DNA of 64,000 nt, from NCBI GenBank assembly GCA_037447605.1, contig CM074806.1, forward strand, positions 4,526,001-4,590,000. The letters run 5' to 3'. Positions 32,122 through 53,868 of the stretch are shown piece by piece. Both the position numbers and the translations under genes were made by a program. The notes beneath the pieces were generated by a model. It was not told the origin of the DNA, ran no database searches, and saw only the letters and a list, made by a program, of their open reading frames with translations. Position 1 is the stretch's first letter, and each line of letters starts with the position of its first letter. The DNA is from Zygnema circumcarinatum SAG 698-1b (lineage: Eukaryota > Plantae > Zygnematophyceae).

Positions 32122-32127
32122 TATAAA
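32122..32127 (+). promoter_or_regulatory. TATA box of the SAMDC-ODC gene
   Basis: TATAAA upstream of a CT-rich 5'UTR exon that ends CTG|gtgagt (intron 32325-32836, tcgcag acceptor). Confidence 0.55.
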
Positions 32128-32861
32128 GCTAGGGTTTTGGTTGCAGAGAAGCCCCGCTTGCTCAGTGCTCTCTCTGCCGCTACCTTTCCCTCATTCTCTC
32201 TCACTTGCTCGCTCTCAGTCTTGGTCTTGGTGGTTTATATTGGTTTTGGTTTCGTTGAAGAGATTATTTTTTATTATTGGCGTTGGAAGGGCGGGTGGTT
32301 GGAACGCTCTCAAGGAATAGTCTGGTGAGTCCACGTGGGAGGGATAGGGAGGGAGAGGAAGGGTAGAGGGAAAGGGATGGTGCGGGAGACGGGAGGATGT
32401 GCGTGTGTTGGGAAGTAGGGGGAGGGGGTATTGGGAAGTTGAGCATGGTTGGTTGGTTTGGTTGGTTGGTTGGTGGGAGTGTGGGAGAGTCGAAGGCAGT
32501 TTGGATTGAAGGTAGAGTGTGTAGAAGAGGGACTATTTAGGAACCAAGGAAGGAAGAAGGGCACGATGAGAAGGGAAAACATGAGGGAGAGGGAGAGGTC
32601 AGTTTGGATGTGCTGATACGATAAAGTATGGGGAGGTATTCAACTGGAGAAGAGAGAAGCGATAATGAGAGGCTGGAAGGAAGGGAAAGAGGACAGACGG
32701 AGGCTTTCATATAGATTTCCTTGTGGAAGGGATGAAGGCTACAGGGGTGTGTTGAGAGATGTTGTAACCATGGTGAGCGGGCTTATAGATGATAAATGAT
32801 CGGAGAACTGACATGGGGTTGCTTCTGTTTTCGCAGAAATTGTTTTCTTTAAAATATCTGA

Positions 32862-32870
32862 ATGAAGTGA
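32862..32870 (+). promoter_or_regulatory. 'Tiny' uORF (ATG AAG TGA) overlapping the small uORF start by one base (TGATG)
   Basis: AATGAAGTGATGGAG; same architecture as land-plant SAMDC leaders. Confidence 0.85.
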
Positions 32871-33160
32871 TGGAGCCCAAGGATTCAAGTAATTGTTCCT
32901 TAATTAGTAAAAGTATTCAGCAATACGAGACGCCCTTAGGGTTTGTGGTGGAGGACGTGCGCCCTCGCGGAGGAGTCGATTTCTTCCGAACTGCTGCTTA
33001 CTCCAACGTCAGCTTCATCCCCCTCCCCTTTTTTTCCCTTCTTTTATCACCGCTTTCTTCTATGTCTTTTTTTGGCTTACTCCTTCCACGTATTTTATAT
33101 CTTGTTTGGCTCACATTTTCTCCTCTTTTCTGGATGCAGTGCGTGCGAAAGCCCTCCTGA
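32870..33160 (+). CDS. SAMDC conserved-peptide 'small' uORF, 52 aa, two exons
   Basis: 32870-33007 plus 33140-33160 (GT-AG intron) give MEPKDSSNCSLISKSIQQYETPLGFVVEDVRPRGGVDFFRTAAYSN|CVRKPS*, matching the plant consensus YEAPLGYxIEDVRPxGGIxKFRSAAYSNCxRKPS. Confidence 0.95.
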   Translation: MEPKDSSNCSLISKSIQQYETPLGFVVEDVRPRGGVDFFRTAAYSNVSFIPLPFFSLLLSPLSSMSFFGLLLPRILYLVWLTFSPLFWMQCVRKPS

Positions 33161-33354
33161 TATTTGCTGCGAGTGAACCCTCTTAACTAGGTTAGGGATA
33201 GACCATCTTTAGAAAAGCTGTCCTGCTTCCTCTCCTCTCTCTCTGCCCCCTTAGGCTTCACCAATTGTAGCTAAGAGGGTTTCTTTACAAGGTCAGGTCC
33301 GCACCTTCCCCCTCTCTTAGCAGATTGGTGGACTTCTCCAGTAGGCGTAGAATC

Positions 33355-36225
33355 ATGGGCGGACTTTTCCCCCCAGAGGAGAAGGCAGCCAAGGGTGCCG
33401 GAGAAGATGGAGCAGGAGGCTTGCCTGTAGGTGGTCTTCCCTGTCCGGGCTTTGAGGGTTTCGAAAAGAGGCTGGAGGTAGAGTTCTGGGAAGTAGAAGT
33501 GGGAGGGGCAGTTGAAGTGGGAGAGGCGGAGGAGGGGCTTGGGCTCCGCCGAATGAAGAGGGAGGCGTTGGATGAGATGCTCACGGCTGCTGCTTGCACC
33601 ATTGTGTCTCACCTTCCGAACGAATATTTTGACTCGTACGTCCTCTCTGAGAGCAGTCTGTTCGTGTACCCGAAGAGGGTGGTTATCAAGACTTGTGGAA
33701 CGACGAAGCTGCTGAATGCTATTCCAAACCTTCTGAAGGCGGCGGAGGCGGTGGGATATCTTCCCCGGAGATGCAAGTATACTCGTGGAACCTTCATGTT
33801 TCCGGCGGCTCAGCCGAGCCCTCACAATTCTTTCGAGGAGGAAGCGAAAATTTTGGAGAAGCATTTTGGAAACTTGGGAGCGGGTGGAAAGGCGTTCGTG
33901 CTGGGAGATGCTTTGAAGTTTCCCAACTGGCACGTGTACGTGGCGGATATGCAGGCTGCTTCTAAGAAGTGTCAGGAGAAGGAGAAGCCACTCTTCACGT
34001 TGGAGATGTGCATGACGGAACTGGACAGGAAGGTGGCGGGACAGTTTTATCAGGAAGCAGGTTTTCAGTCCTCTGCCGATTGCACAAAGGTGTCGGGAAT
34101 TGGAGAGCTTCTCCCGAAATCTCACATTGATGATTTCCTCTTTGAGCCATGTGGGTATTCGATGAACGGCATCGAGGAGAACGCGCATTCGACCATCCAC
34201 ATCACGCCCGAGGATGGGTTCAGTTACGCATCGTTTGAGACTATGGGATACGGAAATGGAGGAACGGATCTTGGCAAGTTGGTGAAGGATGTTGCTACGA
34301 CTTTCAAGCCGGGGAAATTTTCCATTGCTTTGCATACAAATGGAGAGGTGGGACCGGAGGGACCTGGTTCTTGGGGAGGGAAGCTCCCTGTCTTGGAGAA
34401 TTACATATGTGAGGGAACTTCTCGACAGGAGCTTCCTCTAGGAGCTGCGGTTGTTTTCCACACATTTAAGGAAGTACATGGAGCTTCCGATGTCGAGCAG
34501 GCGGTGGCTCCACTCCCTCTCTATCAAGACGTGGGTCTCTTGCAGAAATTCGGAAAGTCGGAGGTTAATTTGAAGGAGTGTGTACCTCAGTTCGATGTTC
34601 ATTCGCCTGTGCACGACTCGTACAAGAAGTTTGGAGCAGCCGCTGCAAATGCGATCGCTTCGATTGAGCCAGTGTTGGTGGGGGCTGGGGCCACTGACAT
34701 TGACAATTATATTTCGGCTGTTATTGCCGGAACGAAGGCTGAGGAGGCGTTTTATGTGATGGACCTTGGAGTCGTCATGCAGTTGTGGAAGCTCTGGACG
34801 GAATCTATGCCGAGAGTGAAACCGTTTTATGCTGTGAAGTGTAATCCGGATCCTGCCCTTCTCTCTGTTCTCGCATCTCTAGGAACTGGCTTCGATGTGG
34901 CGAGTAAGGCAGAGTTGGATGCAGTGTTGCAAGCCGGGGTCTCTTCCGACCGCATGATTTATGCGAATCCCTGCAAGTTACCTTCTCACATCCGCGCTGC
35001 AGCAGAGAAGCAGGTGACTTTGACCACTTTTGACTCAGAGTCGGAGCTCTTTAAGCTAAAGAAGTATCATCCAGGAGCTGAAGCGGTGCTTCGAATCAGG
35101 GCGGACGACAGGGAAGCTCGATGTCCTCTTGGAGTGAAGTATGGTGCAGAAATGGAAGACTGTGAGGACCTGCTTAAGCTTGCGAAGAAGCTCGGAGTTA
35201 AGGTGGTGGGAGTGGCCTTCCATGTTGGAAGTGGAGCCTCCAATGGAGCTGCCTTTGCAGACGGGATAGAAGCAGCCCGCGAAATCTTTAACATGGGAGT
35301 GAAGTTGGGCATGGAGAAGATGTCCCTTTTGGATATCGGTGGAGGATTCACATCGAAAGGAGGTCATGGAGTGGGCTTCAACGCTGCAGCATCTGCTATC
35401 AACGCGGCTCTTGATTTGCATTTCCCGGAGAAGATGGGAGTGAAGGTGATTGCAGAGCCTGGGCGATTTTTTGCAGAGGCCCCAGTGACTCTCGCCACGC
35501 ATGTGTTCGGATCAAGATTCAGAGGGAAGGGGATGGATCGGACATACGAGTACTGGATCAATGACGGTATATACGGGTCTATGAATTGCCTCCTCTACGA
35601 TCACGCACAGCTCTCTACGCGCCCCCTCGCATCTCCAGGAAAGCTGCGGGAATCGAATGGGAAGCCATGGGTTGGGGAGAAGCTCTACCAATCGACCATT
35701 TTTGGACCCACTTGCGATGGACTGGATACTGTGCTTCGTGACGCGTGGCTCCCTCAGCTTGATTGCGGGGATGTGCTGGTAAGTAGACTTTTCCTAAAAT
35801 ATTTTTGTAAACTCTTGTTCGTAGTTTCTTCTTTTTTGTTTTCGTCTGGGCCGTCTTTTATTTCTCATCTGGTTGTAGAGACATTTCCGGAATCTCAAAC
35901 ACTTCCGGTTTGGTGAGTGTAGGTGTTCCCTCGCATGGGTGCATATACGCAGGCGGCAGGATCTTCGTTCAACGGATTCAGTACTGCAGATATTGGCACG
36001 TTCTATGTGTATTCGACGGAACCTAGTGAGAGCAGTGAGCTGCTGCTCGAGGGCCTGCAGGGAGAGAACGATAATGACAGCAGCTCTGGGGGAGATGAGT
36101 CGCTGGTGGAATTGTCCGGAGCCTTCGGAAGGGAGGGCGAAGGCAGCGGAGACTCTTCCTCAGACTTTGGGGATGCTCCAATGGACCAAGGGTTCAGCAG
36201 CGGTAGCGACGATGACTCGTTTTGA
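33355..36225 (+). CDS. SAMDC-ODC: Bifunctional S-adenosylmethionine decarboxylase (N-term) - ornithine decarboxylase (C-term) fusion, ~908 aa, 2 exons
   Basis: Exon 33355-35778 (808 codons) plus 35923-36225. AdoMetDC motifs: GFEGFEKRLEV, YVLSE|SSLFV, KTCGTT, FEPCGYSMNG, TIHITPEDGFSYASFE. ODC motifs: AFYVMDLG, PFYAVKCNP, YANPCK, FHVGSG, LDIGGGF, AEPGRFFA, NDGIYGSMNCLLYDHA, FGPTCDGLD, DVL|VFPRMGAYT, SFNGF. Confidence 0.97.
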
Positions 36226-37762
36226 GTGAGAGGGTTTACCAGCGATAGCGATGATGAAACGTTTTTGAGGGCTCAGTAGGGGTAGAAGCGATGAAGGGTT
36301 GTGAGAGTGGGGATTTCAGAGAGCAGCAGTTAGCAGCGGTTGGAGGGGGTGGACTGTTGGCAGAGGCCATACAGTGGAGGGTGTGGGGGTAGTAGGTAGA
36401 TAGAGTACTGTGGGTGGGTGAGAGGGGGTAACAATGTACCCCTCAAAGCTCTCTAGCACTTGCGTTTTTCGGTTTTTTCTATTGTCCTTTGTTTTTGGTT
36501 TGGTGGGAAAAAAATTAAAATATATATGATTTTTGTTGGGTTCATTTTCTTCGTCTCAAATGGGCTGATAATTCGTGGCAATGAAAAGATCAGAAAAAAA
36601 TGTCTTTCTTATTAGTCCATTTTGAAAAGTTCTCAACTATGGATCGGAATTTATGAAGTCTGCTGAACCTGCTCACATTCAATACGGAGAGTCAGACTTT
36701 GATTACTGAAAAAAAATCAAGTAAGCCTGTACGGAGGGAAAATAGAACACTCGTCGATACGGCAATTTTGTGCCGCGAATTTAGGAGAGTAATTTAGTAA
36801 CCTAGTAATTTAGTAACCTCCTCTATCTCCGGGCAATGTCTGAACCCCTTTTTCCACCCCGCCACGCTCTCTTTTGTCGCCACGCGCGAGAGAGGAGAGG
36901 CGTTCGCAAGTGCGTGGCGCGCATGGCGACGAGGCGCGACACGATTTCTCATCGGCGGAGTGCTAAATTTGCAATTCAGCGTCCTCCAGAGGTCCTGCGC
37001 TTGGGCATGCTGAATCAGCTTAATTCGGGCCCTTTTTGGAGGAATTTTAGTAGTCCCGGTAATCACGGAACGGTACAGACAGGTTTGGGGGAGCCGCGGT
37101 TTCCAACACGAATTTTTCAATCGAAATGAGTGCCTTTTAGCATACTAAATTCGGGAATTTAGTACGTGATGGTCAAAGTCTGACTCCCCCTAACGGAAAA
37201 TAAAAAAAGGACATGAATGGAAAAATATCAAAGGAAAGGCCTGAATGGAAAAAAAAAAACACCAAGGGGAGTGAAGAGTGGGAAAACGAATGGCAGAAAA
37301 AGAAAGAGATAGAGATAGGTAAGACAAATTTCATATCACAAAAAGTAAAGCAACCTTTTGTTAATATAACATTATTTGCCCTAAAACTCGGGCAACCTTT
37401 CATTTGGGCCCTAATCCCAGTCCATAAATTACCACTTCAAAGCCTTATTCCAGGCGGCTCCTCCGTCTACCGCTCTGAGGAAAAGCGTCTAAAGCACACA
37501 AGAAAGGGAGATAACAACAAAAGCCCCCCCAAGTCTACAGCGTTCAGATGTACAAATCAGAAAAATCACTGACCCTAAACCCCTAAAACCTTCAACCCCT
37601 AAAACCCCTAAAAGCCCTAAAAGCCCTAACAAGCCACCATCATCCTCCGCACGCCACACTTTCCTCAACAACCACCACTCTCCACTTCCACCCTCAGCAC
37701 TCCGCTGAACCCTAAACCCCAAACCCTAATTTTCCCTCGCCTCCCCTCCCTTTACCGACTAA

Positions 37763-53868
<16,106 letters not shown>

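Follow-up and report, generated by a model that had tools for sequence, protein, structure and literature searches.

A plant-type dual-uORF leader precedes a predicted AdoMetDC-ODC fusion gene in the zygnematophyte alga Zygnema circumcarinatum

The expression of AdoMetDC (SAMDC) in angiosperms is controlled by a pair of upstream ORFs. In the model developed for this pair, the tiny uORF is used when polyamine levels are low, and termination there is followed by reinitiation at the main ORF; when polyamine levels are high, the weaker tiny AUG is skipped and the small uORF is translated, its peptide repressing translation downstream (PMC2811004). [quoted passage not shown] Chlorophyte AdoMetDC genes (Chlamydomonas, Volvox) have a small uORF upstream and a second upstream ORF overlapping it, as in the locus described here, and the tiny uORF of both algae has already been published (PMC2811004). 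The MAGDIS uORF of mammalian AdoMetDC is comparable to the plant type in that it mediates a polyamine-responsive, peptide-dependent arrest upstream of AdoMetDC, but it is a single uORF of six codons, shows no homology to the plant peptide, lacks the penultimate proline and had an independent origin. Antizyme, made by +1 frameshifting, shares with the uORF switch a polyamine-sensing translational feedback on ODC, and differs from it in acting post-translationally through a separate protein. In Plasmodium, AdoMetDC and ODC form one bifunctional protein, with AdoMetDC N-terminal and ODC C-terminal, as in a fusion from the green alga Micromonas that Green et al. reportedly described in 2011 (Mol Microbiol); to our knowledge, neither fusion is reported to have a leader peptide of the plant type.

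We analysed a 64,000-nt stretch of DNA from Z. circumcarinatum, hereafter the window, in which the forward strand carries what is very likely the zygnematophyte orthologue of the plant AdoMetDC (SAMDC) dual-uORF leader (PF08132; CPuORF homology group 3), placed ahead of a single ORF for AdoMetDC and ODC and presumably acting, by analogy, as a polyamine brake of the angiosperm type. The Arabidopsis SAMDC1 CPuORF (HG3), as far as Hanfrey et al. 2005 is represented in PMC2811004, resembles the pair in the window in its peptide family, in a tiny uORF of two to three codons and in the 1-nt overlap. A direct comparison with soybean extends the likeness to the weak and strong AUGs, the CxRKPS-TGA ending and a phase-0 intron before the last six codons. 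The difference lies in the main ORF: seed-plant genes encode AdoMetDC alone, whereas in the window AdoMetDC is fused to ODC.

The tiny uORF, ATG AAG TGA (M-K-stop, two codons), occupies 32862..32870 on the + strand, and seven relatives have an equivalent. The last A of its stop codon, at 32870, is also the first base of the small-uORF ATG, which gives TGATG at the junction (ATG AAG TGATG, 32862-32872). The small uORF, on the same strand, consists of a first exon of 46 codons (32870..33007) ending in ..RTAAYSN, identified from its translation, its Pfam PF08132 match and the purifying selection on it, a phase-0 GT-AG intron of 132 nt (33008..33139; GT at 33008, AG at 33138-33139, pyrimidine-rich 3′ end), and a second exon (33140..33160) that encodes CVRKPS followed by TGA. 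The penultimate residue is thus a proline, a general feature according to Ivanov et al., and the PS-TGA ending is invariant in 10/10 sequences compared. With 46 + 6 = 52 codons and a KPS-stop ending, the small uORF falls within the land-plant range of 48-55 codons (PMC2811004). The tiny AUG is in a weak context (T at -3) and the small AUG in a strong one (G at both -3 and +4). The tiny/small anatomy, the TGATG overlap and the split 52-aa peptide had been proposed in a first-pass annotation, and the sequence and its translations agree with that proposal to the base.

The intron within the small uORF is free of stops and in frame, so its retention would produce a uORF of 96 codons with the same CVRKPS-stop end. 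Retention alone would therefore not refute the switch, and the earlier suggestion that an unspliced intron 33008-33139 would do so fails, since the intron-retaining uORF keeps the same C-terminus. We also considered a regulatory role for the retained intron and rejected it: the in-frame, stop-free state is absent in other species and is probably due to chance.

The first exon of the small uORF matched the Pfam profile PF08132 (AdoMetDC_leader; E=5.6e-15; 55.4 bits, cut-off 25). Profile positions 12-45 of 51 are covered, and the remaining six correspond to the CVRKPS of exon 2. The exons of the uORF and of the enzyme were analysed singly. PF08132 was also matched by the upstream peptides of 8/8 streptophyte relatives tested (E=4e-14 to 2e-27). 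When the 46-aa peptide of exon 1 was used as the query of a word-based protein search, no candidates were returned, the peptide being too short and too diverged for the word index. Selection was examined, from mean pairwise values, in two blocks kept separate: 29 conserved codons from exon 1, and the five sense codons from exon 2. The mean pairwise pS was 0.64 vs a pN of 0.21, and nucleotide identity at codon positions 1, 2 and 3 was 0.74, 0.82 and 0.47, respectively, which indicates conservation at the level of the peptide, that is, purifying selection. YE, L, E, RP, G, F, AY and PS-stop are invariant in all ten peptide sequences, soybean included, and all are kept in the window, whereas the N-terminal third of the peptide shows no conservation. 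Among several small differences from the relatives, the window peptide shows Phe-Val at a site that is Tyr-Val/Ile in most of them. The leader had been called land-plant-type at first pass, and this description is borne out: it is a true homologue of the dual uORF, with the PF08132 peptide, the 1-nt overlap, the weak and strong AUGs, the penultimate proline and the intron position of soybean SAMDC.

Downstream of the uORF stop, a spacer of 194 nt (33161..33354, + strand) without any ATG (0 vs 2.5 expected) leads to the main AUG. The main ORF exon (33355..35778, + strand, 808 codons) begins in a strong AUG context (A at -3, G at +4) and its Pfam matches are SAM_decarbox (E=5e-107) followed by both ODC domains (Orn/DAP/Arg decarboxylase); the AdoMetDC domain extends over approximately 33448-34470 and the PLP-binding domain of ODC over approximately 34774-35475. 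The translation of the fusion contains LSESS, KTCGTT, HITPE, FYAVKCN, FHVGSG, DIGGGF, EPGR and GPTCDGLD, which we take, by analogy with the human proteins, to be the usual catalytic motifs of the two enzymes. The last coding exon (35923..36225, stop at 36223-36225, + strand), whose translation completes the ODC C-terminal domain and adds an acidic tail, is separated from the main exon by a 144-nt intron on the same strand (35779..35922, GTAAGT...tag), across which the homologues read ..LVF.NMGAYT... The joined enzyme has 908 aa. The tail, rich in Ser, Asp and Glu, adds some 65 residues beyond the ODC fold (36020-36222) and lies outside the Pfam coverage. No second copy of the uORF, of SAMDC or of ODC was found within the 64-kb window. 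Homologues of the fusion with the same three domains amounted to 561 strong matches, none with more than 64 % identity, from Mesotaenium, Spirogloea, Closterium, Klebsormidium, Chlorokybus, Mesostigma, liverworts, Selaginella, ferns and many chlorophytes.

We compared the DNA upstream of ten fusion-homologue loci and two stand-alone SAMDC genes. The tiny uORF with its 1-nt overlap was found ahead of the fusion in the window alga, Marchantia, Selaginella and Adiantum (two codons each) and in Closterium (three codons), as well as ahead of the stand-alone SAMDC of soybean (two codons). The intron that follows the ..YSN codon measures 132, 225, 65, 122, 109 and 95 nt, respectively, in these six. 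Klebsormidium, whose PF08132 match is precomputed on an annotated upstream gene, also has the intron ahead of its fusion (241 nt), and a tiny uORF is not evident in its genomic sequence. The intron is thus in phase 0 at an identical position in seven genomic loci, the position in the window being that of Klebsormidium, Closterium, Marchantia, Selaginella, Adiantum and soybean, and the exception is the stand-alone SAMDC of Chara, which has no intron. Likewise, every genomic locus except Chara has after the intron a last exon of six codons, (C/F)x(R/K)xPS, followed by TGA. All the sequences with a tiny uORF show the same asymmetry of start contexts: position -3 is a pyrimidine for the tiny AUG and a purine for the small one, which also has G at +4.

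Two zygnematophyte-like mRNAs, from ERR2041114 and ERR15302237, contain the tiny uORF with the 1-nt overlap (two codons in the latter) and a contiguous small uORF, with the last six codons joined, followed by the fusion ORF on the same molecule. They provide direct evidence, in relatives, that the uORFs and the fusion are transcribed together. In one further fusion mRNA the leader is truncated at 135 nt and contains no uORF. The first-pass annotation had recommended an alignment with algal and bryophyte leaders, and Closterium and Marchantia turned out to share the tiny/small pair, the 1-nt overlap and the intron. The fusions of Closterium, Klebsormidium, Marchantia, Selaginella and Adiantum, with their leaders, match that of the window and differ from it in sequence details only, apart from the lack of an evident tiny uORF in Klebsormidium. 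As read from these genomic sequences, the arrangement of uORFs plus fusion is not special to Zygnema; it is inherited, and is found also in these five genera.

In Chara braunii, the small uORF of the stand-alone SAMDC (L011 5080-5246) reads as uninterrupted in the genomic sequence, and an out-of-frame ATG ahead of it opens an upstream ORF of eight codons with a longer overlap, instead of the 1-nt type. Candidate upstream ORFs of the chlorophyte fusions of Micractinium and Cymbomonas gave weak matches, below the PF08132 threshold. Around the tiny AUG, (c/t)TGA-ATG-(A/T) was seen in the window (32857-32865), one zygnematophyte mRNA, Selaginella, Adiantum and soybean; the coordinates in the fetched loci are L010 168-176, L004 3548-3556, L006 4580-4588 and L012 approximately 2589-2597. 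The TGA directly 5′ of the tiny AUG is conserved in those five sequences, which fixes T at -3.

Splice and promoter motifs allow a model of the leader on the + strand of the window. A TATAAA at 32123..32128 is a candidate core promoter element, and a putative non-coding leader exon 1 would start about 30 nt past it, so that its start is approximate (32155..32326), and end at a consensus 5′ splice site. Putative leader intron 1 (32327..32836; 510 nt, GTGAGT...ttttcgcag) would then bring the tiny uORF close to an acceptor: the AG with its pyrimidine tract is 25 nt before the tiny ATG, vs 6-12 nt in Closterium, Marchantia, Selaginella, Adiantum and soybean. The 172 nt of putative leader exon 1 contain no ATG, vs 2.3 expected, and the putative intron has 14 ATGs, which matches the expectation from its composition. 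Over the predicted leader exons and spacer together (391 nt), where about five would be expected, there is no ATG beyond the two uORF starts, so the tiny and small AUGs would be the only ones ahead of the main AUG in the predicted spliced mRNA. Such an ATG-free spliced leader, as predicted, is exactly what a switch based on scanning and reinitiation needs. A third leader intron (approximately 33192-33322) was considered on splice-like motifs alone and dismissed as unneeded, the spacer being ATG-free either way. The transcription start, the splicing of both leader introns and expression in Z. circumcarinatum are thus predictions made from the genomic sequence.

Every sequence feature needed by the angiosperm model is present in the window. 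By analogy, scanning ribosomes would first reach the weak-context tiny AUG, and those that used it would terminate after two codons. Termination at this stop would bypass the small AUG, which overlaps it by one base, and reinitiation at the main AUG could then follow across the ATG-free spacer of 194 nt. When polyamines are high, more ribosomes would scan past the tiny AUG to initiate at the small one, with its strong context, and the nascent peptide (..EDVRP.GG..F...AYSN-CVRKPS) would stall the ribosome at its own TGA stop, blocking access to the main ORF and possibly triggering decay of the mRNA. With AdoMetDC and ODC in one polypeptide, the brake would act jointly on the synthesis of putrescine and dcSAM: ODC is translated from the same ORF as AdoMetDC, so the brake would necessarily cover it too. 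Both the polyamine responsiveness and the arrest we infer for this alga from the plant system. The first-pass annotation had proposed one switch for both enzymes. The single ORF that encodes both agrees with this part of the proposal, which also assumes that there are no stand-alone paralogues, yet relatives have both kinds of gene. Since relatives often keep a stand-alone SAMDC, this alga may have sources of either activity besides the fusion, and the coexistence of the two gene types in several relatives means that a single switch for both steps may account for just part of the regulation. In the open-access literature searched, we found no paper linking the uORF switch to an AdoMetDC-ODC fusion.

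The peptide might instead repress constitutively, or respond to an effector other than spermidine or spermine, such as putrescine or thermospermine, with a feedback logic unlike that of angiosperms. The polyamine response has been tested for stand-alone angiosperm SAMDC only, a fusion that makes putrescine could need a different logic, and the Phe-Val of the window, with the other small differences from relatives, could be read in the same direction. We nevertheless consider this unlikely, because the window retains both the residues invariant across the ten sequences and the asymmetry between the tiny and small AUG contexts that the polyamine model requires. It is also conceivable that the uORFs are conserved in the DNA and lie off the principal mRNA, owing to a downstream or alternative transcription start or to a separate short transcript, so that most of the fusion mRNA would escape the switch; uORF-avoiding alternative start sites are indeed documented in Arabidopsis, on the account given in PMC6064979. 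Against this, the absence of ATGs from the leader exons and the spacer suggests a scanned leader under selection, two related algae each have the uORFs together with the fusion ORF on a single assembled mRNA, and the architecture has been kept over hundreds of millions of years, which makes such an escape quite improbable.

A very remote alternative is that the 52-residue product is not a cis-acting arrest peptide and works as a free micro-protein or, through alternative splicing, as an N-terminal extension of the enzyme. Gene models from Chlorokybus (P0031, P0049) and Closterium (P0034) do place PF08132 inside the enzyme, and fusion-type HG3 sequences that join uORF and mORF are known in angiosperms (Takahashi et al.; PMC7106846). 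However, the merged models of Chlorokybus and Closterium may be annotation errors, and a window transcript spliced at 33007 to 33322, the one good acceptor further downstream, would meet a stop within seven codons. The invariant PS-TGA ending fits an arrest coupled to termination. In the public annotations of Klebsormidium, Selaginella and Adiantum, the fusion is preceded by separate PF08132 "genes"; a dual-uORF leader accounts for such calls, as well as for models in which the leader peptide has been joined to the enzyme by mistake.

The relationships of the fusions were examined with a quick maximum-likelihood tree of the SAMDC domain, from a short search. The window sequence clusters with two EukProt transcriptome proteins (SH-aLRT 97) and then with Spirogloea, in a wider group that has Mesotaenium and Closterium. 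Stand-alone SAMDCs are scattered among the fusions, and no fewer than five changes of architecture are needed to explain the supported branches, although the number of events is uncertain and some of the models taken as stand-alone may be truncated annotations. A single clade of stand-alone SAMDCs was rejected by the AU test (p=7e-8). Seed-plant SAMDC thus appears nested among uORF-bearing fusion genes, and on these sequences the direction of change is clear. The ancestral cargo of the dual-uORF architecture was probably the bifunctional enzyme.

That the uORF system is older than land plants, as first proposed for this locus, holds, but this was already published (PMC2075485, PMC2811004). The leader is a real, clean addition to a regulatory family that is well known, and it occurs where the lineage would lead one to expect it; its added value is modest and evolutionary. 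What is new is only the short form with the 1-nt overlap in Zygnematophyceae, which is present in four sequences of the zygnematophyte clade. The modern 1-nt-overlap form of a textbook plant translational sensor is thereby placed in the algal sister lineage of land plants, and the usual cargo of the switch outside seed plants is a fusion of two enzymes. We lean, by a small measure, towards a broader scenario in which the switch did not evolve for a stand-alone AdoMetDC. [quoted passage not shown] Repeated loss of the ODC half would then have left stand-alone SAMDC genes with the leader, and ODC would still be under AdoMetDC-type translational feedback in extant non-seed streptophytes, this alga among them. 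Should it operate as in Arabidopsis, the switch would place ODC in these organisms under the control of a nascent peptide and polyamines rather than of antizyme. The scheme is testable in Marchantia, which shares the architecture and can be transformed.

The fusion and a stand-alone SAMDC coexist in Selaginella, Adiantum and Calypogeia. Mosses were absent from the 120 fusion homologues listed, of the 561 obtained, and Physcomitrium and Ceratodon have several stand-alone SAMDCs. ODC is reported to have been lost in Physcomitrella, which fits the absence of mosses from the homologues listed. Elsewhere in the window, positions 37700-41200 contain long GA/CT-rich tracts of low complexity, whose ORFs read SLSLSL on one strand and ERERER on the other, and an assembly gap shows as a brief stretch of N around 40650-40700.
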